Below are positions 7,108 through 62,922 of a stretch of DNA of 64,000 nucleotides, in pieces. The notes under the pieces are model-generated. The model saw only the letters and a program-made list of their open reading frames with translations. It was not told the DNA's origin and searched no databases. The stretch lies in IMG/VR virus record IMGVR_UViG_3300034073_003340, positions 186,001-250,000 of that record, one strand, 5' to 3'. How positions within the stretch are numbered: the first letter of the stretch is position 1; each line of letters opens with the position of its first letter. Made by a program: the position numbers and the translations under genes.

Positions 7108-7108
7108 A

Positions 7109-7755: not shown

Positions 7756-7758
7756 TGT

Positions 7759-8551: not shown

Positions 8552-8589
8552 AGCCGGGTATAGACATAACCAAACCAACTTGTCAATTG

Positions 8590-8841
8590 CTAGGCAAATG
8601 ACATCTTAAACAACATTGCGTCACTAAGATTGTCAAAATATGCCCGCATGGGCACTTGGTGGCTTTGGTGCTCGGCCTCTGATAAAAATGATCGCAGACG
8701 ATACTCACCATCTTTGGGATAAACCCTGATCATCCAATCCCAAATACGATAGTCGGAAATGTCCCAATTGAACTCAAGACAACAAGGACCATACGTCTTC
8801 AACTTGAAAAAACAAAAATAACGAGAGCTAACCAGTTTCAC
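8590..8841 (-). CDS. FKLxW-family small protein
   Basis: Ends AYFDNLSDAMLFKMSFA; GTGA overlap start at 8841. Confidence 0.8.
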   Translation of the reverse strand: MKLVSSRYFCFFKLKTYGPCCLEFNWDISDYRIWDWMIRVYPKDGEYRLRSFLSEAEHQSHQVPMRAYFDNLSDAMLFKMSFA

Positions 8842-9128
8842 TCCCCGCCCCATGCTAACTTGAACAGTATGGCGCAATTGACCTCACGGAACCCAATAAC
8901 AAATCTTCGATGAATCGGGCTATTACAAAATCCTGGACCCAAGACGTCTTGATTATAAAAATATGACCAACTGGGCGCATACAGGTCAAGCCATTCAACT
9001 AATAAGCTGCTGGGGAATATCTCAAAAGACCACATGCCACTGGATGGTAACTTGATCCAAAGACCTTCCAGTGGTGGACAAGAATAACTGATAAACCAAG
9101 AAGGCACCAAAGTGGACACTTCATACAT
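8838..9128 (-). CDS. FKLxW-family small protein
   Basis: MYEVS...IGFREVNCAILFKLAWGGE. Confidence 0.85.
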   Translation of the reverse strand: MYEVSTLVPSWFISYSCPPLEGLWIKLPSSGMWSFEIFPSSLLVEWLDLYAPSWSYFYNQDVLGPGFCNSPIHRRFVIGFREVNCAILFKLAWGGE

Positions 9129-9142
9129 AACAGAGAAACCAA

Positions 9143-9445
9143 CTAAAGTTGACACCAGGTCAACTTGAACAATACTGCGTCACTGGCCTCCTCAAAGGCA
9201 AACAAAACACCCGTGGGAATCTGAGAACTAAAATACCCAGTAGTTATAGGAGGCGCTACCTCATGATAATACACCCATGAGGGAGTATACTCCTTCATCC
9301 ATTCCACAAGGTGAGCTCGAGGATGAATCGCCTTGAACCAATGACCGCTGGCGGTGGTCCCCGATTGATATTCCAAGAGATCAGAACTACCCCCTCGTCG
9401 CCAAAAACTATCACCCAAAGGTATAGGAATAACAACCTCATACAT
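9143..9445 (-). CDS. FKLxW-family small protein
   Basis: MYEVV...FAFEEASDAVLFKLTWCQL. Confidence 0.85.
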   Translation of the reverse strand: MYEVVIPIPLGDSFWRRGGSSDLLEYQSGTTASGHWFKAIHPRAHLVEWMKEYTPSWVYYHEVAPPITTGYFSSQIPTGVLFAFEEASDAVLFKLTWCQL

Positions 9446-9466
9446 AGAACAAATACCCCTAGGGAA

Positions 9467-9775
9467 CTATTGACCACCCCACGTCAACTTGAACATAATG
9501 GCTAACCCCGGTGGACAATCTAAATGATACCAACGAACCCAAGAACTACGCTCATCATCCCAGGAAAACTCTTGAAACCACTGGCCGTTACCCACATGGT
9601 CGTTGAGCCATCTGATCCGCTCACTGGCAATCTCAAGATCATCAGATATGTCATCTTTGGACGAAGGATCATAACACACTATAGAGAACATTGATCCTCT
9701 ATAGTGGACAAAAGACCGATTGTCACTATAGAGAGATTGATCACAAAGATAACTCTGGTGAGGCACTATCATCAA
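9467..9775 (-). CDS. FKLxW-family small protein (first gene of leftward array)
   Basis: Ends LDCPPGLAIMFKLTWGGQ. Confidence 0.8.
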   Translation of the reverse strand: MMIVPHQSYLCDQSLYSDNRSFVHYRGSMFSIVCYDPSSKDDISDDLEIASERIRWLNDHVGNGQWFQEFSWDDERSSWVRWYHLDCPPGLAIMFKLTWGGQ

Positions 9776-10100
9776 GAATCACCAGAGTTGAGGTCAAGAA
9801 TTCTTATCTATATTCAGACAATTTTCCCCTTTTATCAACCATTTTTCTACAACTATAGAGACTGGAGATGCGCATTATTGCTGGCTCTTAGCAACAAAGA
9901 TTACTGATTTGGCAAAAAGAAAATCAAAAATAATTCTTTCAATAGGAAGACAGATTTAGGCGATTCTGACACTTTTTATACCTCTATGGTGACTCTACTG
10001 TAAAGGTATTTTGTTCACTATAGAGACTACTATGGGAGTCACTATGGGAGTCACTATGGAGTCACTATAGTGGACAACACTGGGTATCGCTTTACTATAA
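9677..10100. repeat. CACTAT(A/G)G iteron-like repeat cluster with AT-rich tract
   Basis: cactatagag at 9677, 9724 and 10017, inverted at 9697, aactatagag at 9851; tandem actatgggagtc x2 then actatggagtc at about 10029-10063; A-rich tract at about 9914-9945. Confidence 0.75.
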
Positions 10101-10301
10101 GGACTCAGAGTTTGTCAGTAGACCACTTTTAGATTTTGGTCAAAAATTTGGCCCGCGCGAAATCGCGCTTTCTAGGATTTTGGATCGTCTAGCTTTTTGA
10201 CCCCCCACTTGTCAGAAAAAGCGGTTTGACTTTTTGCTATCAGTCAAGTGAAAATTTCAATACCTACCATCCATTATCTTCTCAGTAGAAGTATTGACCC
10301 A

Positions 10302-10577
10302 TTAGTCTCTTGGTATTGTTTTCAGTTTATTCAGTATAGAGAGGAATTCCTCTCTATAGTATTCTCGTGAGTCCACCAAGTATTCATAGTATAGTTGGAG
10401 TTCATGTTCTTTGGGTCTATACCTATAATCTAGGGTCTTGTGACCATGTACAACGTCCCAGCAGTAATTGGCTACTTTGGATCTAGTCAGCTTTTCCTGG
10501 GATCTCCGATCCTGTAGTTTCCAATCTAAAGTATAGTTGTGTTCCAGGGGAAGTTCTAGTTGATGAGGATCTTTCAT
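10302..10577 (-). CDS. Hypothetical protein
   Basis: 91 aa ORF on the same strand as its neighbours. Confidence 0.65.
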   Translation of the reverse strand: MKDPHQLELPLEHNYTLDWKLQDRRSQEKLTRSKVANYCWDVVHGHKTLDYRYRPKEHELQLYYEYLVDSREYYREEFLSILNKLKTIPRD

Positions 10578-10631
10578 GCCACAGTCCTTTAGTCATGATT
10601 GAACCCCAGAGTTTGTTCTGGGGTTCAACTG

Positions 10632-11789
10632 TTAGTTGCGGAGGATTACTACCAAGTCGCCTGACCAAGAGGGAGGGTTATCGCCTACCACTGCCAAGTG
10701 ATCTCCATAAGCTATTACTCTATCGCCTGCCACTGGGATACTAATTGTGCCCAATAGATCACCAACCGCCCAAGTAATTGTTCCAATCACCTGACCGTTC
10801 TTCTCAATGTCGCGGGTTTGACTCACTGTGGCCGCTTGAGTTGCCTTTACCCTAGAGTTGCTTACGCTGATAGTAAAGGGTTGGAGGGCTGGGTTGAGGG
10901 CAATAGAGCTTGCGCTCGCGGGGCCTTGTCCCACATAGCCTACCGCGATACTTGAAGTGGAAGCTTTGGCGTCTAGTGCCCCTTGTAGACCCGTTACGTC
11001 CTGGATCGTGTGGGTGTGGATAGCCGGAGCCTTGCCATCAAGAGCGGTTTGGAGATTGGTTACCTGAGAGATCGCAATGGAGCCTGTGGCATCTAGTTTG
11101 AGATCCAAGGCCGCTTGTGTCGCAATGCTGATTGGTTTCTGGGCATCACTGGTATTATTGACGTTTGTGATATTGAGAAAACCTTTGACGTCCACATCTG
11201 TGAGTTCGCTGGCCTGACCTGCCCCTGGACTAGTTTTGCCCAAGATGCGGGGTCCTGCGCTCAACTGGATATCAGCAGCCACGTGACTGTGAGTGGCATT
11301 GGCTTTGAGGTCCAGAGCCGTCTGTGTGGCAGTGCTGATTGGCTTCTGGGTATCGCTAGTATTATCCACATTGCCAAGACCAACCGCTGCCTTGTTCAGT
11401 GTTTGGAAAGTTTTATCGCCTCTCCAATACTGTTGGGCCGTTCCTGCCACAATGGCATCTTCCTTGCCAGCCAGGGCCGCTACTGCCGCATTACTCAGGG
11501 GTTTCAGAGCGTCACTGGTATTATTGACGTTTTCCAGTTCCAAAAAGGTTTTGGCCTGAGTGGAGGTCAAGTTTTGAATAGGGGCATCAGTGGAGCCAGT
11601 GGATCTACCCAATAGACCTGCGCCGGGACTTGTTAGACCGCTGGTAGTAATATTACCTTGATCCACCTTGTTGTCTTGATTCAAGTAAAGTTCATCAAAG
11701 TTATTGTTTACTTTAATGAACGCATCGCGCAGGCCCTCGCCGTCACCAGCATTGGCCGCGCTACCAATATTGATAGTTTGCTTTGCCAT
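10632..11789 (-). CDS. Baseplate/tail-fibre protein with T4 gp9/gp10-like N-terminus and tail repeats
   Basis: MAKQTINIGSAANAGDGEGLRDAFIKVNNNFDELY; three NV(N/D)NTSD..KP.S.A..AL repeats; HTHTIQDVTGLQGALDAKA phage-tail repeats. Confidence 0.8.
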   Translation of the reverse strand: MAKQTINIGSAANAGDGEGLRDAFIKVNNNFDELYLNQDNKVDQGNITTSGLTSPGAGLLGRSTGSTDAPIQNLTSTQAKTFLELENVNNTSDALKPLSNAAVAALAGKEDAIVAGTAQQYWRGDKTFQTLNKAAVGLGNVDNTSDTQKPISTATQTALDLKANATHSHVAADIQLSAGPRILGKTSPGAGQASELTDVDVKGFLNITNVNNTSDAQKPISIATQAALDLKLDATGSIAISQVTNLQTALDGKAPAIHTHTIQDVTGLQGALDAKASTSSIAVGYVGQGPASASSIALNPALQPFTISVSNSRVKATQAATVSQTRDIEKNGQVIGTITWAVGDLLGTISIPVAGDRVIAYGDHLAVVGDNPPSWSGDLVVILRN

Positions 11790-11812
11790 TTTATTCTCCT
11801 CGCCCTGGGGCC

Positions 11813-14800
11813 TTAACTGATACTTCCGTCTGTTAGAGCAAGATTGCTCGAGACATTGATCTGGTTGTTATCTGCGGTGTTGGTTACTACACTGCTCTGG
11901 TTGTCATCTAAATCACCTGACAAGTCCCAAATGTTAGCTGCCACTTTGGTCAAAGTAACATTGGAAAATCTCGTGCGAGTAAAACGACTTGTTGGCGTAT
12001 TGATGATCACGCTGGGTCCTGGCACGATTTCTGTTTGACCGGAACCAATCTGAGTGATGTGAATCTGGACACCAATATTTAATTGAACCGTTGAGTTATT
12101 GGGAACCACTACTTGATTGGGTCCAGTAAAAGACCTACGAATATAGGATCCAGCATCACTGGTTTGGAGAGTATAGGAAGCCGTGGTAACTGGAGTTACT
12201 TTCATACCAGCAGCATCAACTTGCTTTTGACCTACCCAAGTTCTAGTTCTACTAAAGTAGCGGAACAAGTAAAAGGTCAGACCATTTGGCACAATATTGG
12301 GGGCCGTGCTGGAGATCCAAGTAATAGGTCCACCCTGCGTTACTTGAAAGTTGACTTGACGATTACCAACTGAATCTTGCTTTACAGCAATCAGGAGTTC
12401 ACTATAAAGTTCACCGCTAGTATTCAGCGGTCCAGGAGCATAGGAGGTTGGCTCTGGTGTCTTGATCGTCAGAGTAGCTGAGCCGGTCAAGTTTACCAAG
12501 AAAGTATTGCCTGATTTTGGATCAATGACACCGTCTGGTACAACTGAGTTGTCTTCAGTATAGCGGAGAAGAATACCACTGGCATTGTAGTGACCAACAA
12601 AGTTTCCTTCGTCTGGCTGGACATCATAGGCCAAACGTGGTCCACTGATAAAGTCCTGATCACTGCGTCTCTTTACACGAGTAAAGGACCATTCACAGTT
12701 TCCTTCTTTGTAGATTTTGCTGAACTCACCATTGTAGTAAAAGTTTACGTTGGTAAGTTCCAATCTATTTTCTGCTCCGCCAGTATTGGCATCCGCAATA
12801 CTGTAGAGACCCACAGTATAGTCTCGGATGGTATCAGGCTGTTGAACGGTGACCTGAACCCAGGGAGTTTTGAGGCTTTCACCTGCGTTATTGGGATCAT
12901 CAATTGGATTACCCTGTGGATCAAGTAATAGGGTCTCGACGTTGTTTCCTTCGTCGTCCTGATTATTCAATAGAGTAACACCGGGATCATCTTCAAACGC
13001 GTCATCTCCCGTAGTGGTTAGAAACTTGGGTCGTCCACCTTCCCAAAGGGGAAGAGATGGGTTATTGATATTCACGCTGTAGTTTTCTGGAATAATGGAT
13101 CCAACATTTTCCATTATCAAAACACCACCATTGTGTTCAATACCTTTGAGTAATGGGGCACCAGAAACCAAAGTAAAGCTTTCGGGACTCAACTGAAGAC
13201 CCGTCCAACCATTTTCAGGAAGACCGCAGTTTTGGAAAACAACACGATTTCCATCCGCAATAGTCGAGTTGTCAATTTTACCCTGAATAGTACAGTTGAA
13301 GAAATTGACATCACCGCCAAGCTGACCATTCAAAGACATAACGGTCAAATCACTCAGAGGACCAGGTCCTCTCAAAAAGGAACAGTCCTTGAAAGTCGCT
13401 TTGCCAACACCACCTACAATCGCAAAAGTAGGCTGAAATATTGAACTTGGTTGATCACTAGTATCAATGGTGATTTTGCTCATGAGCAGTGAATCAACAT
13501 TGAATAGTATTTGGACGTTTCCTTTGATTACTGAATTTGTGGAACCAAAGAAACCCTCAATGGCAAGATTTCTCTTGTTTTGAATATCAACATTTTCCTG
13601 ATATGTTCCACCCAGAAGCATTATGGTATAGGTGGTCAGCAAATCTCCATTGGGGATTTCACTCAACGCGCGATTTATGGTCAGGTAGGGAGAGTTCAGC
13701 GACCCGTTGCCCGTGGTATCATTGCCATTCTTACCAACAAAAATCGTGTTTTGGATCGTCTGAAAGAACTGCTGAACCGAAGACCATACTAGTGTATTAC
13801 TTGGACCCTGTGTTAGAAACTGGCCAGTGGTGCCAGCGGTGGACGGGAAAAGCAGTCCATTTAGGGTCAAAGAGGGCGATTGTAGGGCCACCGCTGGTGC
13901 TTGTAGAGCCAAGCTGGTTCCTGTGCCACCATCTAGTGTGATGCCCGTCTGTGAAACCCTGATAGAGCTGGAAGGAGCAATCGCATGGCTTTCAATGAAG
14001 ACACCATTATTACCAGAAGTGGTAATTGTAAAACCCTGAACGTCCAGATCTCCACCCAGTTGTGGAGTTTCATCAACCACAATTTCAATCAAATTGTTGC
14101 GCAACTGAGCAACTGTCAATCGCTTTGGTTGATTATCACCAGAGGACAAGAAGATGAACTGGTCAGTGTTGGTGACAATTGGCTCGGCGTCCAATTTGCC
14201 AATATCCAGATTGACAGTTGGCGCTTCACCTGTTCCAGTGACCGTTATACCAATTCCACCAGTTACTCCGCTGACACTTCCTGCACCAACGGGTTGCCAG
14301 GATAGATTGGATCCTTGTGCCACCAGGGCAAATGCTCCAGCGCCGCCAGGAGGTGAAAACGCAATTGACTGATTGTTGGAATCACCCACAATAATGGATC
14401 CCTGATTCAGGGTGTGACTCAAAAGACCATAAGGAATTATTTTGGTTCCAGTGGCAATCAATCGACCATTTTGATCAAAGGCAAAGGTTGGAAACACCAA
14501 GTTGCCAGAACCGGTACCAATATTGGTTCCTTGGATTGGAACAGTGATTCCACTCTGATGATCAATATACCAGTCAATAGAGTGTTGAATAGCTTCATGG
14601 GCAGTCAAGCGACCCTTGGCATCAAATGAAAGTCGGAAGTCACCAAGATCACTGTTATAGGTTACTGGGCCCTGGATTGTGTTTGATAGAGTGAAATTTA
14701 TTTCCAATGTTGGATCAGCAGCGCCAACGACTACCGCATTGTCAAATCTATCACTCTGACCCGCGGCATCTCCAACAAAACTCAAACGAGTATTTTGGAT

Positions 14801-27665: not shown

Positions 27666-28915
27666 CGTAAAGCCTCCTGAATTCTCAAAAATACCTCTTC
27701 ATTGCCCAAAAGGGTCAAGCAGTCCACAATAGGCGGGCTTGTCTTACTCCCTGTGAGGGCCATTCGCAGAGGGGCTACCACTTTGCCCAACTTGAGGTTG
27801 AGGTTCTCTGCGACCCCATTTAGGACTTCCATGATGTGATCATGGTCCCACTCAACGTGCTTGATGGCATTGTTTACCAACGACAGAACCATCTTCTCGT
27901 TATCGTTCAGAGGTTCTGAGAGGATAATGGGACTTTTAGCCCAGAGAAACATTGTTCCCTCGATCAAAGCATTCATATCAGAAGAACGTTCTTTTAGAGC
28001 GTCAACGGCCCCCAGGAGTTTATCTTGGGGCGGTGTTGGAATGCCGCGCCCTTGAAGACCCGGAAGAATCTTTTCAGCCAAATACTGTGAAGACGACTTC
28101 CTGATATAGTGACCGTTGAGATTCATCAACTTTTTCTTATCAAGCCTCGCGGGATTTCGACCAACGTCCTTGATGTCAAACCACTCAACGGCCTGCTCCA
28201 TGGAGAAAATTTCGTCGTTGCCGTGACCCCAACCCAATCGAGCAAGATAATTGAGCATGGCTTCGGACAGAATACCCATTTCCTGGTAGTCTGTTACCGC
28301 TGCGGCACCGGTGCGCTTTGAGAGCTTTTTGCCATTCTCATCCAGGATCAGGGGAATGTGGCCATAAGCTGGAATAGGCCAACCCATGGCCCGGTAGATG
28401 CTCATCTGCCGAAAGGCATTGTTGAGGTGATCATCGCCGCGAATCACATGAGTGACGCCCATATCGTGATCGTCGACCACCACAGCTAGCATATAGGTTG
28501 GCGTGCCGTCCTTGCGGAGAATCACAAAGTCGTCGATATCCTGGGGCCATGTGACTTCGCCCTGAACCAGATCGTTTATCGTCTGTGCGCCCTTGGTCCC
28601 GCGAATCCTGACTGCCCCATCATCATAATAGGCCAGCATGTCGTCCACGAGTTGCTTGGCCACTTCAACATGGCGAGCAGCGCGCTCACTCTGCAGGACG
28701 ATCTCCCCGTCATGATCCAGCCCCAGCCACTTCATACCATCGTAGATGGCCTGGACAGCCTCGGGAGTGTTGCGCTCCTTGTCGGTATCCTCGATGCGGA
28801 GGAGGAACTGACCTCCTGTATGGCGCGCATAGAGCCAGTTAAAGAGAGCAGTGCGGGCACCACCGATATGGAGGTAGCCCGTAGGCGATGGAGCAAATCG
28901 TGTTACAATAGTCAT
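27662..28915 (-). CDS. gltX: Glutamyl-tRNA synthetase
   Basis: TRFAPSPTGYLHIGGARTALFNWL, LRIEDTD, PTYMLAVVVDDHDMGVTHVIRGDDHLNN, KLSKR, C-terminal anticodon-binding domain. Confidence 0.95.
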   Translation of the reverse strand: MTIVTRFAPSPTGYLHIGGARTALFNWLYARHTGGQFLLRIEDTDKERNTPEAVQAIYDGMKWLGLDHDGEIVLQSERAARHVEVAKQLVDDMLAYYDDGAVRIRGTKGAQTINDLVQGEVTWPQDIDDFVILRKDGTPTYMLAVVVDDHDMGVTHVIRGDDHLNNAFRQMSIYRAMGWPIPAYGHIPLILDENGKKLSKRTGAAAVTDYQEMGILSEAMLNYLARLGWGHGNDEIFSMEQAVEWFDIKDVGRNPARLDKKKLMNLNGHYIRKSSSQYLAEKILPGLQGRGIPTPPQDKLLGAVDALKERSSDMNALIEGTMFLWAKSPIILSEPLNDNEKMVLSLVNNAIKHVEWDHDHIMEVLNGVAENLNLKLGKVVAPLRMALTGSKTSPPIVDCLTLLGNEEVFLRIQEALR

Positions 28916-28967
28916 AGGGCCACTCTGCATTCAAAGTGGGTCCTTGTCTACCGCTTTGTGGATCGCG

Positions 28968-29198
28968 TTACAGCGAGTTCACATTATCCCCAATGAACTC
29001 GTCACTGTCCTCGAGATCACCCTCGGGTGTGAGAAACCAGCTGGCCAGAACCAGACCACTGCTGTCATATTCAATAACATAGATGTCACCAGCCGCGGTT
29101 GGGATCTCGTTGAGGAGATCCTTGGCTTCCCGATGCGCAAGCTCTTTGCTATTGGCCTGTTCAATCACCCCACTGTTGGGGATAAAAGCAGCAAACAT
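28968..29198 (-). CDS. Hypothetical protein
   Basis: Downstream of cassette promoter at 29253. Confidence 0.65.
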   Translation of the reverse strand: MFAAFIPNSGVIEQANSKELAHREAKDLLNEIPTAAGDIYVIEYDSSGLVLASWFLTPEGDLEDSDEFIGDNVNSL

Positions 29199-29247
29199 CG
29201 TAATCTCCGATCCTTGTTCCAACTCATTAGAGTTAGCATAGATAGGT

Positions 29248-29280
29248 GGGTCGTCAACCAGTTTCCTAGTTGACGACCCA
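29248..29280 (-). promoter_or_regulatory. Inverted repeat covering the -35 of a cassette promoter
   Basis: tgggtcgtcaac...gttgacgaccca. Confidence 0.75.
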
Positions 29281-29293
29281 GCAAACTGCCTTT

Positions 29294-29617
29294 TTAGCTG
29301 TTGCTAACGCGCACCGCTGCCACACCCTCCAGCGAGGGCGACAGCGCCAGCCAGCCGCGCTTTGCGTCCACCAGGCCGACCTTCTGACCAGCGACCAGGT
29401 TCAGACCGTCGAAACCGCGCAGGCTGAACTTGACCGACGAAACATCCTTGCGCGTCAGCTTGAGCAGCTTTTCGCCCTTGGGGAGAGCCTTGCCGCAGAC
29501 CCGATCGGTGGGCTTGATCATCAGCACGCCGTCTTCCATCTTGACGCGAACCTTGGGAGCGTCCTTGACGAAAACCTGGGTGGCGGCTGCGTTGAAGTTC
29601 AGGGTAAAACGTGCCAT
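29294..29617 (-). CDS. AbrB/MraZ-like paralog 1 (putative DNA-binding)
   Basis: KVRVK...IKPTDR...LPKGEKLL...KRGWLAL, shared with 39719 and 56865. Confidence 0.75.
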   Translation of the reverse strand: MARFTLNFNAAATQVFVKDAPKVRVKMEDGVLMIKPTDRVCGKALPKGEKLLKLTRKDVSSVKFSLRGFDGLNLVAGQKVGLVDAKRGWLALSPSLEGVAAVRVSNS

Positions 29618-29724
29618 GTTTCGATCTCCTCGTTTCCAGCAGCGCCGATCGCTGCGTCCATGTTCTCGTTCTATACTCTGGTGAGGAGAAGTCAACCAGT
29701 TTTTCACCAGTTTTCAAAATCTGG

Positions 29725-30000
29725 TTAAAGGGAGCGAGCTTCCTGGAATGTCATCTCATCCACTAGGATGATATCAGCGTCTGTTTCAATCCAGGCCCGA
29801 TCGCCGCACTGAAGCTGTGATCCGTTATATACCATTTTACTTGGCCCTTGGATCTCAACTTCTCGGGCATAACGGACTTTGCCATTTACCTTTATGGTGT
29901 AGACAGGTCTGTTGCCGCCATCTTTGGCGTTCATCGCAATATGCTGCCGGTTTACATGAATGATCTTAGGCACTTGGAATCGCCTTTGGACGACCGTCAT
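29725..30000 (-). CDS. Conserved-type phage hypothetical protein
   Basis: KIIHVNRQHI..N...PV.T.K...YAREVEIQGPS..VY...L.CG.RAWIET; start uncertain. Confidence 0.75.
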   Translation of the reverse strand: MTVVQRRFQVPKIIHVNRQHIAMNAKDGGNRPVYTIKVNGKVRYAREVEIQGPSKMVYNGSQLQCGDRAWIETDADIILVDEMTFQEARSL

Positions 30001-30373
30001 CGCCAATATGAACGAACACATACATGGCTTCGCAGACTTTGGTCTCAACCCCTGTACAGCCCGCGAGCGCATAGGTACACACCATGACGCTCATGCTAGT
30101 GGTACCCTCACGCTTGATATCAGCGTAAATGACCACTTCGTCACCAACCTTCACAGGTGCGAGGAACTTGAAGCCCTCCACCGCAACCGTTACAGTTCTG
30201 CCACCTGCTCGTCGCTTTGTAACTGCGCCTGCTGCCAAGTCCATTTGACTCATGAGCCAGCCGCCGAAAATATCACCATCTGGGTTGGTGTCGTTGGGCA
30301 TGGCAGTAAGGATGCGGACGGGCTTGCGGCCCTCATTGATTGATGCTGTCATATGACCATGTAGAGGTATCAT
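29966..30373 (-). CDS. yciA: Acyl-CoA thioesterase (hotdog fold, YciA-like)
   Basis: AMPNDTNPDGDIFGGWLMSQMDLAAG...VTVAV..FKFLAPVKVGD...GTTSM. Confidence 0.9.
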   Translation of the reverse strand: MIPLHGHMTASINEGRKPVRILTAMPNDTNPDGDIFGGWLMSQMDLAAGAVTKRRAGGRTVTVAVEGFKFLAPVKVGDEVVIYADIKREGTTSMSVMVCTYALAGCTGVETKVCEAMYVFVHIGDDGRPKAIPSA

Positions 30374-30398
30374 CTTTTCAAAGTCAATAAATAGTCAT

Positions 30399-30707
30399 AT
30401 GACAAAACCAACTGATCCTCGAACCATTCTCCGTGAATCCATCGACCGCATCGACGAGCTTATGGGTTTCAAACACCCCAAGGCTTTTGGTCAAAAAACC
30501 GAACCTAGTGATCAAGAGATTGAAAACAAGGGTCAGCAACGTCTCAAGGCAGTGGCAGATCGTGCCAATACGGAAAAGAAGTCCTATGGATTTCTCAGAT
30601 CTCTTAAGAGTAGAGTGTTTGGCAAAAAGACTCCAGAATACCAGCGCGAGCCACGTTCTCCCGAGGAACGACTAAAGGCTATAGCTGCCCGCGCCAAGCA
30701 GTCTTAA
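30399..30707 (+). CDS. Hypothetical basic protein, probably late
   Basis: One of only two plus-strand genes called in this region; TAAATA at 30388-30393. Confidence 0.7.
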   Translation: MTKPTDPRTILRESIDRIDELMGFKHPKAFGQKTEPSDQEIENKGQQRLKAVADRANTEKKSYGFLRSLKSRVFGKKTPEYQREPRSPEERLKAIAARAKQS

Positions 30708-31528
30708 TCAGAGTCACTGTCATCTTCCTGATCCACGTCTCGCTTTGTCTGAGTCTCTAGAATAATATTCGCAAAAACAACACTAGCTTCTTTTCCGCCA
30801 TGTTGGGGACCAACACCCTCACTTGGGACGATTTTCTTACGAAGTTCCCCTGCGGCAATGCTCAGAACGCTGAGACGACGCTTTGCCGCAAGAACGCTAT
30901 CAAAGTCTTTGCCTTCTTTAATGCGCTCCTGGCACAAAGTGGAATAGCCAGCCATCATTCCATCACTTGATCGAGTCAACCTAGCATCGGCCAAAAGCAA
31001 AGCGAGCTCTATCGAAGCCTCGCGGCTGACTAATGCTTCCTCCTTGATCTTGGCGATGGCGTTGACTAGTTTATTGAGATAGTTCACATCGTCCTGGCCT
31101 TTGAGATCGAGCATCTCATTGATTGAAGAGACCTTGATACTTTTCCCATTCAGGAAAACATAGGGAAACTCTGGTTCTAGTTCACCCAAGCGATCAAAGA
31201 TTTCTCCGTGAATCCAGAAGCGCGAATAGTTGTCGCCCATATTGCGGTTTGGAATTTGCTCTAGCATGTCGAGGCTGAAGTCATCGTTCTGTTCTAACAA
31301 CAGACCAGTCTGCTCATTGAAGATCGTGAGTATCTCAGGATCGTCCTCAACGCTAAGATAGCCATAGTCGTTGTAGGTGCCCTTGAGGAGGGTTGAGTGG
31401 GGCACAAACAGGTCGAATGGCCCGTGGCCATTCTCATAGGTCGGACCCCTGAGGACCATGACGTAGGCGGTTTCACCCTCTCTGATCTCCAGACCAGAGA
31501 ACCCGCACGATTCACTCCAACTGCCCAT
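30704..31528 (-). CDS. Hypothetical protein
   Basis: 274 aa, GAGG SD. Confidence 0.8.
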   Translation of the reverse strand: MGSWSESCGFSGLEIREGETAYVMVLRGPTYENGHGPFDLFVPHSTLLKGTYNDYGYLSVEDDPEILTIFNEQTGLLLEQNDDFSLDMLEQIPNRNMGDNYSRFWIHGEIFDRLGELEPEFPYVFLNGKSIKVSSINEMLDLKGQDDVNYLNKLVNAIAKIKEEALVSREASIELALLLADARLTRSSDGMMAGYSTLCQERIKEGKDFDSVLAAKRRLSVLSIAAGELRKKIVPSEGVGPQHGGKEASVVFANIILETQTKRDVDQEDDSDSD

Positions 31529-31605
31529 TTGATGCCTCTAGCTGATACGACTGATATCGTAAAGCAGCACCTTAGCACCAAGGTCTTGTGAAGCAAATAT
31601 TCTTG

Positions 31606-31758
31606 TTAAAAGTTGTTGGCTTTGAATTCTTTTACCCAGCCACGGTCCCACGCCTTGTAGTCGTCAGAGCCTTTGGGGAACGGATTATCTTCACGCTCCT
31701 TGCTGTTGTGGTAGTCGGTCCGTCCCAACTTGACACGAGGATTTGGAGCCTTACGCAT
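31606..31758 (-). CDS. RMF-like small protein (50 aa, not in ORF track)
   Basis: MRKAPNPRVKLGRTDYHNSKEREDNPFPKGSDDYKAWDRGWVKEFKANNF; GGTGG SD. Confidence 0.65.
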   Translation of the reverse strand: MRKAPNPRVKLGRTDYHNSKEREDNPFPKGSDDYKAWDRGWVKEFKANNF

Positions 31759-31933
31759 TATCCACCATTTACCAATGCCCTACTATAGATATCAAACGCC
31801 TGACCCAATATGATCATCCCTGAACCGGTCAGCATCATGATTACAGGCGCTCGTATTCCTCTTCGCCAAAAATAGTGGGCAAATGGAAACATCGCAAATG
31901 CCCACAGGAGAAATACGAGATTAAGCAGCGTTA

Positions 31934-32329
31934 TCAAGCAGTTGCTCCAGCAGCAAGACGACCCATATTCTTGATATTGTCGCCCAGCTTTGCCATCATC
32001 AGCTGATTTTTGAAGCTTTTCACGAAGTTGGGATAGACCGCTTCAATGGACGGATATTCACCGTCGCTGGTCTGGTTGACAGCGATCTGGCGATATCCCT
32101 TATCCCGAATTTTCTTCGAGGTCAAGGCCTGCAGGTCGTGAGCGCCCCACCGTCCGGGATTGTATTTGAAGGTCAGCTTCTTGCGCGTTTCTGCGCTTTC
32201 GGGCCGCCGACCCCAGAAATTGTAGAGCTTGCCTTCGACCTCGACCCAGCCCCAAATCTTGTCTGAGCCCTTTTTGCCAGCATCCGGGTCATTACACCAC
32301 AGAAATGCCTTGATAGTGAAATCAACCAT
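31934..32329 (-). CDS. WGR-like domain protein
   Basis: SDKIWG...FWGRR...KK..KGY pattern; AGGAGATCGAAT RBS. Confidence 0.6.
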   Translation of the reverse strand: MVDFTIKAFLWCNDPDAGKKGSDKIWGWVEVEGKLYNFWGRRPESAETRKKLTFKYNPGRWGAHDLQALTSKKIRDKGYRQIAVNQTSDGEYPSIEAVYPNFVKSFKNQLMMAKLGDNIKNMGRLAAGATA

Positions 32330-32380
32330 GATTCGATCTCCTCTTTTGATGCCACAATATAGCACAAAAGAGGAAACTGT

Positions 32381-32689
32381 CTAGCCCTTTTTGGAACCAA
32401 GTTGTTCCCGGGCCCTTTGGATAGCAGTGCGGAGGTCGAGGCCTTCCTCTTCCCTGAGCTTGCGAATAAGCGCAACCTCGCGGTTGATTGCCTCACGATC
32501 GATGGGACGAAAGGGGACATATTCCGCGCCGCGTTCTTCGGCCCAAAGCTTGGCCGAACGTTCGGCATCAGCGAGATTGTTGAAGCTGTCCCAAAAGGCT
32601 TCGCGATCCATGGATTCGCCCTGACCCCAAATCATAGTGGGGAGGAAGAGACCATAAGAGGTTTCCTGAACTTGGACAATCTTGCGCAT
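32381..32689 (-). CDS. Hypothetical early protein
   Basis: Follows cassette promoter 32744. Confidence 0.75.
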   Translation of the reverse strand: MRKIVQVQETSYGLFLPTMIWGQGESMDREAFWDSFNNLADAERSAKLWAEERGAEYVPFRPIDREAINREVALIRKLREEEGLDLRTAIQRAREQLGSKKG

Positions 32690-32753
32690 ATCAATCTCCA
32701 CGTCTGCTTCCGATAAACCAGATTTAGCAGAACTGGTGAATATGTCAACCAGA

Positions 32754-33032
32754 TTATCCCCACCGTAGTTTGAAATAGATAGCCTCTTTGGTAAATCGCT
32801 TTGGTATTGTGAGTATTGCTTGACGCGATTCCAAGAGATTTCTCAAAAATTCCTTCAAGTCAGCTAATGACCAAGAAGTCTCGGGAAGGTGTGAACACCA
32901 CTCGACCATGTCAAAGCAGTCAGTTTCCTCGAGATTTTCCCTACTCAGAAGCTCAAGCATTTCCTCTATATCCGGATCAGGGTCGTGCTCTGATAGTTTG
33001 AGTAGCCGACGAAGTTCTTCCAATACTAACAT
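32754..33032 (-). CDS. FKLxW-family small protein (isolated copy)
   Basis: Ends RFTKEAIYFKLRWG. Confidence 0.75.
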   Translation of the reverse strand: MLVLEELRRLLKLSEHDPDPDIEEMLELLSRENLEETDCFDMVEWCSHLPETSWSLADLKEFLRNLLESRQAILTIPKRFTKEAIYFKLRWG

Positions 33033-33035
33033 TGG

Positions 33036-33293
33036 TTATCGGTTCATCAAATAGTTTTGCCAGCTCTTTATCTCTTCTGGAGTCCAAACTCGGGTTCTCA
33101 ATGCCTTGAGTCTGCCAGCTTCAATGGCTTCAAGCAAGGGAACCAGTTCCTTCCATGTGGATTCGTCTCGACCTAACCAACTAGCCGCTGCTCGACATTG
33201 TTGTTCCAAAGAATGTGGTTCGATTCTTTCTATAATCTCATGAGCAGTAACTTGATCTCGTCGAAGATTAGCCTCTTCATTGTTGTCAGTCAT
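33036..33293 (-). CDS. Hypothetical protein
   Basis: 85 aa, ATGA-coupled. Confidence 0.7.
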   Translation of the reverse strand: MTDNNEEANLRRDQVTAHEIIERIEPHSLEQQCRAAASWLGRDESTWKELVPLLEAIEAGRLKALRTRVWTPEEIKSWQNYLMNR

Positions 33294-33814
33294 GCGCTGC
33301 GAGCCTTATGGTATTCCAGAGCCTTTTCAGGAGTGCTAAGGCCCTTGATATCGCCTTCACCCACATAAGCAAGATGCGATCTGCCATCTGGAAACCAAAA
33401 GTCAATACCATAGACCATTGGACTGTTTCCCATCAATCCCGCGCCGCCCGAGACATGCCTGATTGTTCCGTGACCAGTTTCTCCCATGCCAAGATTGAAT
33501 ACAACAAAATCTCCAGGCTCATAGATTGCCGGTTTGGCTTTACTGATTTTCTTAATCAGTTCGAGTAGTATCTCGTCAGAGATATAACCGATCTCAAGTG
33601 AGTAGCGGTCCAGATATTCCCTAGCCACTGCTAGTTGTTCATTTTTCACCAGATTTGTCCTTGAAGACGTCGCCGTAGAGAGGATGTTCCCACCATTCTC
33701 CTGGATGATACCACTGCTCGCGCCGCTTGGATTCATCCAAGAGCCGCTGAATACGAGGGCTACGTTGGATAACACCACAGTTGAAAATGCTGAAAAATCC
33801 CTGCCAGAACGCAT
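33290..33814 (-). CDS. Hypothetical protein
   Basis: 174 aa, operon packing. Confidence 0.7.
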   Translation of the reverse strand: MRSGRDFSAFSTVVLSNVALVFSGSWMNPSGASSGIIQENGGNILSTATSSRTNLVKNEQLAVAREYLDRYSLEIGYISDEILLELIKKISKAKPAIYEPGDFVVFNLGMGETGHGTIRHVSGGAGLMGNSPMVYGIDFWFPDGRSHLAYVGEGDIKGLSTPEKALEYHKARSA

Positions 33815-34087
33815 TCATAGCAAAGACTCAACTTCAATAGCGGCTAGCTTTTGTGAAACCTCTTCGGCTGTGACTTGATTTTCATAGTCAAGTCCCAGTT
33901 GCTTCAAGCCATACTGATGAAGACGAGAAACAGCATCATCTCTGGATGTTAGTTGACCAGTTCTCTCAACAATAAGAATACGCCAACGATTGAAGCCCAT
34001 ATTGGCTTTGGTCTTGTGGTAGCCGGGTGTCTCGCTGCTATGCCAGATATTCACGTTATTCGCTCCAATCGTCAGAGACTTAATCAA
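33815..34087 (-). CDS. Hypothetical protein
   Basis: 90 aa, operon packing. Confidence 0.65.
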   Translation of the reverse strand: MIKSLTIGANNVNIWHSSETPGYHKTKANMGFNRWRILIVERTGQLTSRDDAVSRLHQYGLKQLGLDYENQVTAEEVSQKLAAIEVESLL

Positions 34088-34319
34088 AGAAGCCGCGCTT
34101 GCCTTTTATATACTGATCAAAGGCATCAGTTTTGCCGAAGATCTTTTCCATCTTACTGGGCTCATCTAACTGATTTTTAAGAGCTTCCAGATCGCGCCTG
34201 TCCTGCTCTGCCTGTTCAAGCAGCCTGTGAACTTCTTTCAGCCACGATCGCTTAACCGTTATTTTGGTGTCAGGATCCCCAAAAGTCACCGACTTCAAAG
34301 TCTTCATATCAATTGCCAC
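34080..34319 (-). CDS. Hypothetical protein
   Basis: 79 aa, operon packing. Confidence 0.7.
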   Translation of the reverse strand: MAIDMKTLKSVTFGDPDTKITVKRSWLKEVHRLLEQAEQDRRDLEALKNQLDEPSKMEKIFGKTDAFDQYIKGKRGFFD

Positions 34320-53266: not shown

Positions 53267-54382
53267 TTACACCAGTTCGAAAACTTCTCCGGTTTCCAGG
53301 TCTTCACACATGATGATGAACTTGTCGACGATTTCCTCGGCAACCTTGGTCACGGCAGCTTCAACAATTGCGTCCACCTCGTCATCGCTTACAAAAGCGC
53401 CATGGACCCTGCGAACCGTTGAACCATTGCTGACCAGCATATCACCCCAGCCCAGCAGGTTCTGCGCACCGCCCTGACCCAGTGCCGTGCGGCTGTCGAT
53501 CTCGCTGCTGACGCGGAAGCAAATACGCGCAGGGAAGTTGGACTTGATAACACCGGTTACAACGTCCACAGAGGGCCGCTGAGTAGCCATAACAACATGG
53601 ATGCCCGCTGCCCGAGCCTTTTGCGCAAGGCGCTGTACGAGCCCTTCCAGTGTTTTTCCACCAGTCTGCATGAGATCAGCAAACTCGTCAATGAAGACCA
53701 CAATATAGGGCAATTCGTTTCCGGCTTCCTTGTAGGCCTTGATATTGCGAACGCGGGCGTCAGCGAGCAGTCGGTAACGCCGCTCCATTTCCTCAACCAT
53801 ATCCTCGAGGGCACGGATGGATTCACGCGGGTCGGTGATAACCGGCTGGACCAAATGAGGAATGCCATTGTAGATGGACAGTTCCAACATCTTTGGGTCG
53901 ATCATGAGGAACTTACATTCATCAGCTGACAAAGCTGCCATGAGGCTGATGATCATCGCGTTGATACCAACGCTTTTGCCTGAGCCAGTTGTGCCACTGA
54001 CCAATACGTGGGGCATGGTTGCGAGGTCGGTGACGACCACTTCACCCATAACGTCCAGCCCGAGAGCAATGGGCAAAGCCGCAGTGGTGGTCTTGAACTC
54101 CTCGCTGGTCAGAACCTCGTTGAGGAGTATGGTCTTGCGCTGCTCATTGGGAATTTCAACAGCCAGTGTGGGGCTACCAGGCATCACGTTGATCTGGATG
54201 CTCGCAACACCAAGCAGGCGCGCCACGTCCTCGTTGAGCTTCATGATCTGCGAAGCACGAGTTCCAGCGGGAATTTCGATTTCGTAAACGCTGACCAGAG
54301 GTCCTTGCTTGGAACCAATAACACGAACACGATGTCCGAATTCGTCCAGGGCGCGTTCCAGTGCGGTAGCAAAGTTACTCAA
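53267..54382 (-). CDS. ftsK: FtsK/SpoIIIE motor domain only (no TM, no gamma)
   Basis: PHVLVSGTTGSGKS, MIDPKMLELSIY, IDEFADLM, AQKARAAGIH..ATQRPSVDV.TG.IK.N, GAQNLLG.GDML; TTG start. Confidence 0.9.
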   Translation of the reverse strand: MSNFATALERALDEFGHRVRVIGSKQGPLVSVYEIEIPAGTRASQIMKLNEDVARLLGVASIQINVMPGSPTLAVEIPNEQRKTILLNEVLTSEEFKTTTAALPIALGLDVMGEVVVTDLATMPHVLVSGTTGSGKSVGINAMIISLMAALSADECKFLMIDPKMLELSIYNGIPHLVQPVITDPRESIRALEDMVEEMERRYRLLADARVRNIKAYKEAGNELPYIVVFIDEFADLMQTGGKTLEGLVQRLAQKARAAGIHVVMATQRPSVDVVTGVIKSNFPARICFRVSSEIDSRTALGQGGAQNLLGWGDMLVSNGSTVRRVHGAFVSDDEVDAIVEAAVTKVAEEIVDKFIIMCEDLETGEVFELV

Positions 54383-61182: not shown

Positions 61183-62922
61183 TTATCCACTTGCTGATTC
61201 CAGTAGTCGATCAACGTGCCATTGGCAAAAATCTTCCATAGTGCAGGTTTTGCTGAATCCTAGAGTGAGCGCAAAATCCCGAAAATCATAATCACAGTCC
61301 CATATGGTTATGTTGAGACCCTTGAAGAATCTTACGTTTGCCTGCCATACAATCCTACTAAATTCCATTTCCACATCAGCGGGAATCTTTGCCCTCGCCC
61401 TCAGATTAACATAAGGCAACGCATAGGGAACGCGAGCACCGGTATTGTAACTGGTGACTACACTGAGCCCGCCAAACAGTGATCCCACGATAAAATCACG
61501 TAGATCAACCACATCATAATACTCAGTTCCAGCATAGTTGGAAAAATCCGACAAGATTACCGTGTCGATGACCTTGACATCTTTTGGTAGAATCGCGATA
61601 GCACTGGCAATGGTTCCACCAGTCACACAGTCATCTTCTACCATTACATATTCACCAGCAGGAATGCTACTGGCCTGGTCTTTTAAGCTTGGCATTCCGC
61701 CGCGATTTGACCTGTAGAGAGGCTTATCCTGAGTATCGCTCAACGCAAAATATCGCGTTGAGTCAATTCGGTAAGATCCTTCAAAGAACGGATCAAGACT
61801 GATAGTGGGTCGATCTCCTACTACCTCTTCAGCCTTTTTGATTTGGTCTGTTACCGAAACAAAGTGAACCTTATTTTTCTGGCCAGTTTTTTTAAACAAC
61901 TGAGCAATGCCAAGTCTGATAGCACTTTGAAGTTGAATGCGACGCTTTTCCAACTCTTCAAGCGAAGGGAAATGAGATGTAAAAACACTGCCAAGATCCT
62001 TCCAAAGATCAATGGCTAGATTTTCTTCATTGCGAATCAAGTAAGGAAGATCACCTGTATCCAACTTGTCCCAAGACTTTAGATATTCACTTACCCTAGG
62101 ATCCAAATGGTCATGATTACCCTCGCGAGCCAACTTGCTGGAAATATTACTGCGCGGCACACAAATGTGGTTAGAGGGCAGCGCCTTAGCGAACCCCTGG
62201 TTGTCTGAGCCAAAAACGTATACGACTTTGATTCCATCCGATATGTGTTTTTGGATCGATTCAGTCAGCCTTGCTACCACATCAGTAAAATTGATTTCAG
62301 CTGGCATATAGCGTGAGGCCCAAGGATCACAGGATAACCAGCTGCTATCCTGCGTGGCGAGTTCTACCATAGCACAACGGTGAACCGCAGGGATGGCCGC
62401 GGTTCCGTTATACTTTTGGCCCACATAACTATCATGACCTGGTGAGAAGAACCCTGCGATTACCTGTGATTTGCCATCCTGTTCTATGAGCTCACGGGCT
62501 GCTTCCATCATGGCAATATGACCGTTATGGATTGGTGCCATGCCACCAGTGGTCACTAGGACCACTCGTCTCTTTCCGCTACTGGTTTTGTAATTTTCGA
62601 TCAGCTTGTGGAAAGAAGTGGTCAAAAACATTGGATCATAGGCTTTATGATCCTTGGCTAACTTTTCCAGGCCGTCATCAAAAAAGCCAGCATCATAGAG
62701 AACTTGAGTGTTCTGATATTGGCTGTAGAGATAGTGATAACAAGGGTCACTTAGCGCCTTCCAAGCATATCGCTGGTCAGGGGTCATCGCTCCTTTTTCT
62801 TGAAGCGTATAACCATACTCAGCAGCTTCTGAGGGTAGAATGGCCGGATCGACCCCGAGAATCTCATATAGATTCTCAAGAGGTCGATACATTGTTATAC
62901 CACAGGCGTAAGTATCTGTCAT
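61183..62922 (-). CDS. NMNAT/NadD-like nucleotidyltransferase fused to type-I PRTase domain
   Basis: TGGMAPIHNGH, GFFSPGHDSYV..K, HRCAMVELA...W...DPW, VFGSDN; C-terminal VMVEDDCVTGGT PRPP-binding motif. Confidence 0.75.
   Translation of the reverse strand: MTDTYACGITMYRPLENLYEILGVDPAILPSEAAEYGYTLQEKGAMTPDQRYAWKALSDPCYHYLYSQYQNTQVLYDAGFFDDGLEKLAKDHKAYDPMFLTTSFHKLIENYKTSSGKRRVVLVTTGGMAPIHNGHIAMMEAARELIEQDGKSQVIAGFFSPGHDSYVGQKYNGTAAIPAVHRCAMVELATQDSSWLSCDPWASRYMPAEINFTDVVARLTESIQKHISDGIKVVYVFGSDNQGFAKALPSNHICVPRSNISSKLAREGNHDHLDPRVSEYLKSWDKLDTGDLPYLIRNEENLAIDLWKDLGSVFTSHFPSLEELEKRRIQLQSAIRLGIAQLFKKTGQKNKVHFVSVTDQIKKAEEVVGDRPTISLDPFFEGSYRIDSTRYFALSDTQDKPLYRSNRGGMPSLKDQASSIPAGEYVMVEDDCVTGGTIASAIAILPKDVKVIDTVILSDFSNYAGTEYYDVVDLRDFIVGSLFGGLSVVTSYNTGARVPYALPYVNLRARAKIPADVEMEFSRIVWQANVRFFKGLNITIWDCDYDFRDFALTLGFSKTCTMEDFCQWHVDRLLESASG

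Follow-up and report, generated by a model that had tools for sequence, protein, structure and literature searches.

NMN/NaMN adenylyltransferases of the eukaryotic NMNAT1-3 type and of the bacterial NadD type share a HIGH-superfamily Rossmann fold with HxGH and ISSxxxR signatures. In the Preiss-Handler pathway, NadD acts between the type-II, ATP-coupled PncB and the NAD synthetase NadE, converting base + PRPP to NaMN, then NaAD and finally NAD+, and pncB-nadD-nadE clusters have been reported in jumbo phages (PMC11662467). Bifunctional NMNAT fusions, regulated by NrtR in some bacteria, are also found in bacteria and in phages, large phages included, namely NadM-Nudix (NatV; NARP2 with Nampt) and NadR (NARP3 with PnuC), and both NARP2 and NARP3 make NAD directly from NMN (bioRxiv 10.1101/2024.02.11.579819; PMC13464706). 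NARP1 instead combines Adps, which has a PRTase-related (Prs-like) fold, with Namat, and its chemistry starts from ADPR. Among type-I PRTases (APRT, HGPRT, OPRT; PF00156), UMP synthase offers a precedent for the fusion of a PRTase to the next enzyme of its pathway (OPRT-OMP decarboxylase), but no type-I PRTase is known to act on nicotinate or nicotinamide.

Here, we analysed a jumbo phage gene located in a 64,000-nucleotide stretch of DNA (hereafter the window; positions 186,001 to 250,000 of IMG/VR record IMGVR_UViG_3300034073_003340). A first-pass annotation, made from the sequence alone, had described a J-domain-like start, an NMNAT-type centre and a C-terminal type-I PRPP motif, and had proposed a possible one-protein NAD+ salvage enzyme distinct from NARP1 and NARP2, or the synthesis of another dinucleotide. 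The observation held: the reading frame is open under genetic code table 11, every motif originally noted is present, and all three domain assignments survived testing. The interpretation, on the other hand, was only partly supported, as detailed below. The relevant features are collected in the table; the genome carries two CTA-anticodon tRNAs.

Features of the fusion gene, of its predicted partners and of the canonical NAD cluster in the phage genome (window coordinates unless marked as genome; conservation of the NMNAT signatures and PRPP loop among 89 homologs)
Feature	Coordinates	Strand	Residues	Sequence or conserved positions
Complete ORF (P0001): J-like + NMNAT + type-I PRTase-like fusion	61183..62922	-	579 aa	
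J-domain homolog lacking the HPD loop, followed by a conserved linker	62608..62922	-	1-105	AGFFDDGL linker; G79 and F80 invariant
J-like motif			17-26	NLYEILGVDP
NMN/NaMN adenylyltransferase (HIGH-superfamily nucleotidyltransferase) domain	62053..62586	-	113-290	
NMNAT motif			126-135	GGMAPIHNGH
(H/T)xGH ATP-binding signature	62518..62529	-	132-135	HNGH; H135 invariant, H132 and G134 conserved in at least 90%
NMNAT motif			159-167	FSPGHDSYV
NMNAT motif			181-201	HRCAMVELATQDSSWLSCDPW
ISSTxxR-type second signature of NMNAT/NadD	62125..62145	-	260-266	ISSKLAR; S262 invariant, S261 and R266 conserved in at least 90%
Divergent type-I PRTase-like domain	61186..62052	-	291-579	
PRTase core			~356-465	
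Family-specific C-terminal sub-domain			~470-579	
Predicted PRPP-binding loop	61612..61650	-	425-437	YVMVEDDCVTGGT; D430, D431 and G435 invariant, T437 conserved in at least 90%
PRPP motif			429-437	EDDCVTGGT
2OG-Fe(II) oxygenase	genome 256966-257721			
NadE*	genome 257873-258907			
Canonical PncA-PncB-NadM-NadE-Nudix cluster	genome 28.7-34.2 kb			

The start codon is supported by the conserved N-terminus MTDTYACGIT among phage homologs, and the architecture is conserved in 136 full-length homologs at 31-76% identity, so it is not a chance juxtaposition. A profile of the N-terminal region searched against the PDB retrieved almost only DnaJ J-domains (PF00226), more than 15 distinct ones at E 7.8e-6 to 1e-3, matching over helix II/helix III but with a deletion of about 10 residues over the HPD loop that activates Hsp70. 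No HPD was found in residues 1-105 nor in the family consensus. The J-like start is real homology, but we consider it probably a structural cap and not a co-chaperone.

The central domain matched PF01467 at E 1.6e-8 (35.2 bits against a cut-off of 21), and a PDB sequence search returned human and mouse NMNAT1/3 at E 1e-12, with the SP.HD.Y...K...HR..M..LA...W..DPW block aligned. The AF2 model of the protein was of high confidence (pLDDT 95.3, pTM 0.93), and all top Foldseek hits were NMN/NaMN adenylyltransferases (NMNAT/NadD). However, identity is only about 23-26%, and the score against the NadD equivalog TIGR00482 (E 4e-10, 40 bits) lies below the curated cut-off of 112.45 bits, indicating a divergent subfamily and not an orthodox NadD. 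Moreover, judged by eye, the segment that holds the pyridine-stacking Trp in NMNAT1/NadD appears shortened. Grouping with CTP-transferases of other pathways had been named beforehand as a refuting outcome; the domain instead groups with NMNAT/NadD and not with other cytidylyltransferases.

The C-terminal type-I PRTase-like domain is very divergent. The PRPP loop has the expected hydrophobic strand, acidic pair and TGxT, and a family profile aligned it in register with the APRT loop VVVVDDLLATGGT (E 0.011). PF00156 was hit by 8 of 57 family members (best E 8e-4), yet not by the phage protein itself at E up to 1. In a wide structural search (VIA), about 32 of the top 35 chains were type-I PRTases or their kin, at Z 5-7.3 and rmsd 2.6-5.4, which we regard as a moderate match to the five-stranded alpha/beta core (Z below 8), and a Foldseek search of the PDB with the C-terminal model alone was weak, with Prs as best hit (E 0.018). 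Structure-atlas look-alikes carry PF00156, with TM 0.70 to standalone PF00156 proteins and 0.88 to versions fused to a HAD phosphatase. The sub-domain of about 110 residues that follows the core is family-specific and has its own invariant residues.

The gene is almost never alone and is not restricted to phages. An exhaustive search for the domain family yielded 1,204 representatives (at 50% identity) in jumbo phages and diverse bacteria, and the module occurs in Legionella, Paraliomyxa, Obscuribacter, Chthonomonadales, Clostridia and CPR bacteria. A dedicated NAD synthetase gene, which we call NadE*, lies on the same strand within 2 kb upstream in 21 of 22 cellular loci. Single-chain NadE*-oxygenase-NMNAT-PRTase proteins exist in Legionella (1,118 aa), Paraliomyxa (1,483 aa) and many representatives of about 1,130-1,210 aa. 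All viral records at least 90% complete that were searched whole have NadE* and the oxygenase 10-13 kb from the fusion; five more viral loci show both within the flanks retrieved, and one shows NadE* with a radical-SAM gene. In the phage studied here NadE* and the oxygenase lie 8-10 kb away, just outside the window. NadE* exceeded the TIGR00552 equivalog-domain cut-off (63.65 bits) in 5 of 5 representatives tested, namely the phage (97.0), Obscuribacter (105), Collierbacteria (87.7), a further locus designated L041 (73.9) and Legionella (115.1). The idea that NadE* is a LarE- or QueC-type PP-loop enzyme was rejected, since only trivial P-loop matches appeared. A predicted complex of the fusion with phage NadE* scored 0.00, which is not evidence either way.

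Each of the 22 cellular loci also carries either a 2OG-Fe(II) oxygenase or a radical-SAM gene. The oxygenase is P4H-like and retains an intact HxD...H...R set (H148, D150, H223 or H227, and R243 invariant), and the phage protein passes PF13640 (32.9 bits against 27). A profile search of the PDB found only weak prolyl-4-hydroxylase matches (E 1.5e-3), so there is no substrate clue. The oxygenase travels with the module in genomes of likely aerobic lineages and in phages, whereas loci from likely anaerobic lineages carry radical-SAM genes instead. A 375-aa neighbour that gave nothing in a PDB sequence search was identified as RaSEA-like radical SAM. The different radical-SAM types are not shown to be equivalent to the oxygenase. 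Other neighbours point to NAD metabolism: an NrtR regulator is adjacent in two CPR-type loci, and a CN-hydrolase glutaminase-type gene follows the Legionella ORF.

We next asked whether the module is redundant in its hosts. In 5 of 18 host genomes the fusion is the only NadD-like hit, and 4 of 18 lack credible hits to both type-II pyridine PRTase families; there the module must supply NaAD/NAD, and apparently NaMN too. In Curtissbacteria, NadE* is also the only credible NadE. However, 12 of 18 host genomes have canonical NadD, most have NadC or PncB, and MAG incompleteness weakens the argument from missing genes. A search for PncA in genomes without type-II PRTases found isochorismatase genes in the genomes designated G411 and G417 and none in G002, G235 or G408. 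The phage itself encodes a separate canonical set. The only PF04095 hit in its genome is PncB-type, above the NaPRTase cut-offs NF003704 and TIGR01514, which ruled out our idea that this gene is the Nampt or Namat of NARP2 or NARP1.

Other searches gave little. PHROGs profiles returned only a faint heptose adenylyltransferase match for the fusion and nothing for its immediate neighbours, a tblastn search of 50,697 deposited phage records found no match to the fusion, and a promoter/terminator scan around the gene gave nothing above shuffled expectation. We found no description of the fusion in the papers searched.

Considering all the above results, we propose, with moderate confidence, that the ORF encodes the central enzyme of a conserved, mobile NAD-biosynthetic module. 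In this model, the type-I PRTase domain would join a pyridine-carboxylate base, most simply nicotinate, to PRPP to give NaMN, the NMNAT domain would adenylylate NaMN with ATP to NaAD, and NadE*, an ammonia-type NAD synthetase about 9 kb away in this phage, would amidate NaAD to NAD+. What the analysis establishes is the reading frame, its three-part architecture and its gene linkage; the NMNAT step is well supported by homology and fold, and the NadE step by a curated-threshold match and near-obligate linkage, although the activities themselves are deduced without biochemical data. The PRTase reaction is inferred, its base specificity cannot be read from sequence, and any role of the oxygenase, be it making the base available from a precursor, supplying nitrogen or tailoring, is conjecture. 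The occurrence of the PRTase-like domain fused to a HAD phosphatase, or as a separate gene in one locus (L042), is as expected of an autonomous catalytic unit that hands a nucleotide to the next enzyme. On the other hand, a second nicotinate route looks redundant in a phage that already has PncB, NadM-type NMNAT and NadE, and a plain Preiss-Handler route does not need an oxygenase or a radical-SAM gene, which hints at a different precursor or a tailored product.

Like NatV and NadR, the gene fuses an NMNAT to a second, predicted NAD-related enzyme and is present in a large phage. However, the partner fused to the NMNAT is a type-I PRTase and not a Nudix or a ribosylnicotinamide kinase (no P-loop kinase domain was detected), the NMNAT is of the NadD/eukaryotic type and not the archaeal NadM/NadR type, and the coupling to NadE implies the deamido route. 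With respect to the Preiss-Handler clusters, the proposed chemistry is identical and the three activities are likewise clustered, but the first step would be carried out by a type-I-fold enzyme, the enzymes are fused, and an oxygenase or radical-SAM gene is always attached. As for NARP1, also a phage-borne route to NAD+, we recognised here neither a Prs-like two-domain Adps nor a Nampt-like Namat, no second NAPRTase-family gene was found in the genome, and the proposed chemistry starts from base + PRPP.

Among the alternatives, we cannot exclude that the module makes a modified pyridine dinucleotide or starts from a non-canonical base, with the oxygenase or radical-SAM enzyme tailoring base, mononucleotide or dinucleotide, or the PRTase taking an unusual heteroaromatic carboxylate, and NMNAT and NadE* then acting on that altered substrate. 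This minority reading, which remains tentative, is favoured by the constant presence of these partners, by the PLP-decarboxylase-fold gene, amino-acid racemase or C-terminal GNAT found in some cases, which give a biosynthetic-cluster look, by the redundancy with canonical NAD genes in the phage and in 12 of 18 hosts, and by a sporadic distribution (2 of 401 Patescibacteria sampled). However, in the five small genomes where the fusion is the only NadD-like hit it must be able to make ordinary NaAD/NAD, and NrtR adjacency and the NadE* scores point to NAD itself. A broader possibility, likewise tentative, is a previously unrecognised route to NAD+ or to an NAD analogue, in which the first type-I-fold PRTase acting on a pyridine base works with an obligatory O2/2OG-dependent or radical-SAM-dependent step; this would let cells and jumbo phages make the cofactor from a non-canonical precursor, or in a tailored form that NAD-depleting defence enzymes handle poorly.

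Less likely, the PRTase-like domain may be a PRPP- or nucleotide-sensing regulatory or oligomerisation domain attached to an ordinary NadD, leaving just the universal NadD + NadE pair. Its structural neighbours include PurR, PyrR and a ppGpp-binding PRTase-like protein, regulatory proteins such as PurR and PyrR also keep the PRPP loop, similarity to catalytic PRTases is only moderate, and most hosts can make NaMN through NadC or PncB. Against this view, four module-bearing genomes lack credible hits to both type-II families, many invariant residues lie beyond the PRPP loop (R390, R407, D473, D476, R497, Y500, R510), as expected of an active site, and the standalone and HAD-fused contexts fit catalysis better than NadD regulation.

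The one-protein salvage route, in which a single protein would convert nicotinamide + PRPP + ATP directly to NAD+ (Nam to NMN to NAD) as a fused analogue of NARP2, is very unlikely: the NMNAT domain is indeed closest to the eukaryotic-type enzymes, which accept both NMN and NaMN, and is directly fused to the PRTase, but the near-obligate association with, and frequent fusion to, an NAD synthetase would be pointless for an amidated route. A nucleotidyltransferase of a pathway unrelated to NAD, for example a CTP- or ATP-dependent sugar-phosphate or cofactor transferase, suggested only by the breadth of PF01467 and the faint PHROGs match, can be all but dismissed given that all significant sequence and structure matches are NMNAT/NadD, that the partner is NadE by curated threshold and that NrtR is a neighbour.

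NAD+ supply is a central battleground between phages and bacterial immunity (Thoeris, DSR, Sir2-HerA and the NARP1-3 counter-pathways) and a classic case of non-orthologous enzyme displacement. In this phage, the module would represent a second, self-contained NAD+ supply line, which plausibly sustains NAD+ during infection or under NAD-depleting defence. Since the family is large and no description of it was found in the papers searched, a single biochemical study would annotate many genes. The always-present oxygenase or radical-SAM partner points to chemistry not yet described for NAD metabolism. If the PRTase domain forms NaMN, it would be the first type-I-fold pyridine PRTase, and the module would constitute a compact, horizontally mobile base-to-NAD cassette, sometimes a single protein of about 1,100-1,500 aa, and a fourth kind of phage NAD+ supply system, which would also fill apparent NAD-pathway gaps in some CPR and small Clostridia genomes.

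The ORF encoding the fusion, P0001, is open for 579 aa, and the observation made by the first-pass annotation holds, since the J-domain-like start, the NMNAT-type motifs and the type-I PRPP motif that it had read in this ORF are all present. The ORF lies in bases 186001-250000 of a 435,856-bp virus record with direct terminal repeats, with 46% GC, a coding density of about 89% under table 11, and 59 tRNA genes. The T4 gp15-like tail protein of this genome is 45% identical to those of Agrobacterium phage Atu_ph07 and Sinorhizobium phage Phosso. It is therefore an uncultivated jumbo myovirus. Two of the tRNAs carry the anticodon CTA and could act as amber suppressors; however, given the coding density already reached under table 11 and the absence of internal stops in the ORF, no alternative code was applied. 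The window itself contains no tRNA. GC content rises from ~0.42-0.46 (window 1-22 kb) to ~0.49-0.53 (22-58 kb) and falls again to ~0.47-0.49 at 58-64 kb, where the fusion lies, and in the 40-64 kb part and downstream to genome ~262 kb most ORFs are small, on the minus strand and of unknown function.

Coordinates of the fusion, its predicted domains, its partner genes and other features in the phage and in related loci (L numbers denote individual loci taken from a genome or virus record; aa positions refer to P0001)
Feature	Sequence	Coordinates	Strand	Size
P0001, NMNAT-PRTase fusion	window	61183-62922	-	579 aa
J-domain-like start motif	P0001	aa 17-26
NMNAT-type motifs	P0001	aa 126-135, 159-167, 181-201
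Type-I PRPP motif	P0001	aa 429-437
J-like domain	P0001	aa 1-105
NMNAT domain	P0001	aa ~113-290
PRTase-like domain	P0001	aa 291-579
Region matched by type-I PRTase structures	P0001	aa ~356-465
FtsK/SpoIIIE-like ATPase	window	53267-54382	-	371 aa
NadE*	phage genome	257873-258907	-	344 aa
2OG-Fe(II) oxygenase	phage genome	256966-257721	-	251 aa
NadE* and oxygenase together	phage genome (locus L039)	256966-258907 (L039:11966-13907)	-
Canonical NAD cluster	phage genome (locus L003)	28740-34178 (L003:6741-12182)	+
tRNA genes with anticodon CTA	phage genome	99130-99204 and 293258-293333
tRNA block	phage genome	~292-325 kb
FtsK-like gene	L040, related 389-kb phage	1800-3005
NadE*-oxygenase-NMNAT-PRTase single ORF	L018, Legionella shakespearei	6685-10041		1,118 aa
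NadE*-oxygenase-NMNAT-PRTase single ORF	L013, Paraliomyxa miuraensis	7382-11833		1,483 aa
CPR-type locus	L042	3790-8119
CPR-type locus	L015	8308-13646
CPR-type locus	L022	11773-12858
Operon with MoaA-like radical-SAM gene	L041	7062-11689
PRTase-like domain fused to a HAD phosphatase	atlas cluster; model m00845b0a7cc5	residues 1-286		611 aa

An AlphaFold2 model built on 89 homologs is very confident (pLDDT 95.3, pTM 0.93) and divides the protein into three parts. A profile of the N-terminal segment hits almost only DnaJ J-domains in the PDB, at E values from 7.8e-6 down to 1e-3, but the alignment opens a gap of ~10 residues exactly over the HPD loop, and no HPD is present. This is true J-domain homology without the Hsp70-activating motif, for which we infer a structural role. 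The central domain scores above the cut-off of Pfam PF01467, while its best NCBIfam hit is NadD, below the cut-off of that model. Searches of PDB sequences returned human and mouse NMNAT1/3 at E 1e-12, and every top Foldseek hit is an NMN/NaMN adenylyltransferase, with the eukaryotic type first and bacterial NadD next. The HxGH and ISSxxxR signatures are conserved family-wide.

In the C-terminal PRTase-like domain, a family profile aligns the PRPP loop in register with APRT (E 0.011), and 8 of 57 family members hit PF00156. In a Foldseek-independent structural search of 48,161 chains, about 32 of the top 35 matches are type-I PRTases or their kin (HGXPRT, OPRT, APRT, Prs, PyrR, PurR), with Z 5-7.3. 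Searches of a structural atlas also returned look-alikes labelled PF00156; the same domain is standalone (TM 0.70) and also, linker included, fused to a HAD phosphatase (Hydrolase_3) instead of an NMNAT, in CPR proteins (TM 0.88 over 281 residues). The latter may represent a base-to-nucleoside variant. Beyond the invariant D430, D431 and G435, the family has its own invariant residues (R390, F392, D473, D476, G485, R497, Y500, P503, R510 and N529) in a C-terminal sub-domain with no match in the PDB.

A word-based search found 136 full-length homologs at 31-76% identity, and an exhaustive profile search with the PRTase-like part found 1,204 representatives, 596 of them at E ≤ 1e-30. Cellular carriers include the isolates Legionella shakespearei and Paraliomyxa miuraensis, a 7-Mb Obscuribacter contig, Chthonomonadales, Cellvibrio, Iamiaceae, Clostridia, Gastranaerophilales and CPR bacteria. 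Our key finding is gene linkage. In 21 of 22 cellular loci, a gene of the NAD synthase family, which we call NadE*, lies on the same strand within 2 kb upstream of the fusion, usually abutting or overlapping it; the exception, locus L021, shows only the oxygenase. NadE* passes the curated NCBI cut-off for NadE in all five representatives tested (74-115 bits against 63.65), whereas an identity as LarE or QueC is not supported. In Legionella and Paraliomyxa, a single ORF spans NadE*, an oxygenase, the NMNAT and the PRTase. Many representatives of ~1,130-1,210 aa exist, and one of them, P0139, is confirmed to have this architecture; about 17 of the best 150 representatives in the exhaustive search are 1,130-1,212 aa long, consistent with the same all-in-one form.

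A fourth component is always present. Loci from lineages that are typically aerobic, as well as the jumbo phages, carry a P4H-like 2OG-Fe(II) oxygenase with an intact HxD...H...R set, either fused to NadE* or as a separate gene. Clostridia, Gastranaerophilales and Mollicutes loci (L041 and L007-L012) instead carry a 291-aa MoaA-like radical-SAM gene in a tight operon with NadE* and the fusion. In all of them except L009, a PLP-decarboxylase-fold gene was also detected, and some of these fusions are 705 aa long with a C-terminal GNAT acetyltransferase. CPR-type loci (L042, L015 and L022) carry a RaSEA-like radical-SAM gene and an amino-acid racemase, and in L042 the NMNAT (222 aa) and the PRTase-like protein (296 aa) are separate genes. 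The functional equivalence of the oxygenase and radical-SAM genes is our inference, and the aerobic or anaerobic habit is a general attribute of these lineages rather than a result of this analysis. Further NAD-related neighbors are an NrtR regulator in two CPR-type loci (L042 and L015) and a CN-hydrolase after the Legionella ORF.

In this phage, NadE* and the oxygenase are encoded as separate genes on the same strand as the fusion, 8-10 kb away and just beyond the end of the window. The same spread-out layout is conserved in related phage records of 277-465 kb. Searches of the three whole records that are at least 90% complete (G418, G419 and G420) found NadE* and the oxygenase 10-13 kb from the fusion, and five further viral loci (L040, L046, L049, L051 and L052) show both within the flanks retrieved, while L050 shows NadE* with a RaSEA-like radical-SAM gene. 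The one record without them is a 39%-complete fragment. The window also encodes an FtsK/SpoIIIE-like ATPase (phrog_1358, E 6e-97), and a homologous FtsK-like gene lies between NadE*/oxygenase and the fusion in the related 389-kb phage, although its position relative to the fusion differs.

The phage also has a separate, canonical NAD cluster, which consists of NadE (331 aa), a PncB-type NaPRTase above curated cut-offs (437 aa), a 113-aa unknown, a Nudix (225 aa), a NadM/archaeal-type NMNAT (201 aa) and a PncA-like isochorismatase (210 aa), followed by an RNA ligase. Together these form a full nicotinamide-to-NAD Preiss-Handler route, and such clusters have already been reported in jumbo phages (PMC11662467).

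Considering these results, and in the absence of biochemical or expression data, we regard it as well supported, from sequence, predicted structure and gene linkage, that the protein is an NMNAT/NadD-type adenylyltransferase working with a dedicated NAD synthetase, that is, in a deamido (NaMN to NaAD to NAD+) route. That the fused type-I PRTase makes the NaMN from a pyridine carboxylate and PRPP is an inference. Depending on what the oxygenase or radical-SAM partner does, the input may or may not be plain nicotinate and the product plain NAD+. A tailored product or a non-canonical base remains a possible, though less favored, reading. It is less likely that the PRTase-like domain is regulatory. 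The interpretation of the first-pass annotation is only partly supported; the one-protein salvage that it had raised as a possibility, taken as a direct route from Nam to NAD, appears very unlikely. A function unrelated to NAD is more improbable still.

The module differs in architecture from NARP1 (Adps + Namat), NARP2 (Nampt + NMNAT-Nudix) and NARP3 (PnuC + NadR; PMC13464706). A survey of viral NAD+ systems lists only NadV, NadM and NadR (PMC9503650), and the study of NAD genes in jumbo phages treats only canonical ones (PMC11662467). We found no description of an NMNAT fused to a type-I PRTase or of the NadE*-oxygenase partner, although most subscription-journal papers fell outside our search and the absence of a description is thus not proven.

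Finally, we examined the NAD gene complement of 18 module-bearing cellular genomes. Twelve have a canonical NadD scoring over the curated cut-off, and Paraliomyxa has one additional NadD-like hit below it. In five small genomes (three CPR, two Clostridia MAGs of 1.2-1.8 Mb) the fusion is the only NadD-like hit, and in Curtissbacteria NadE* is also the only credible NadE. Four genomes have no credible hit to either of the type-II pyridine PRTase families tested, PF04095 (PncB/NadV) and PF01729 (NadC). The incompleteness of MAGs limits the argument from missing genes. The module is rare, being found in 2 of 401 Patescibacteria sampled. It is thus an accessory, mobile cassette that in some reduced genomes appears to be the whole NAD route.
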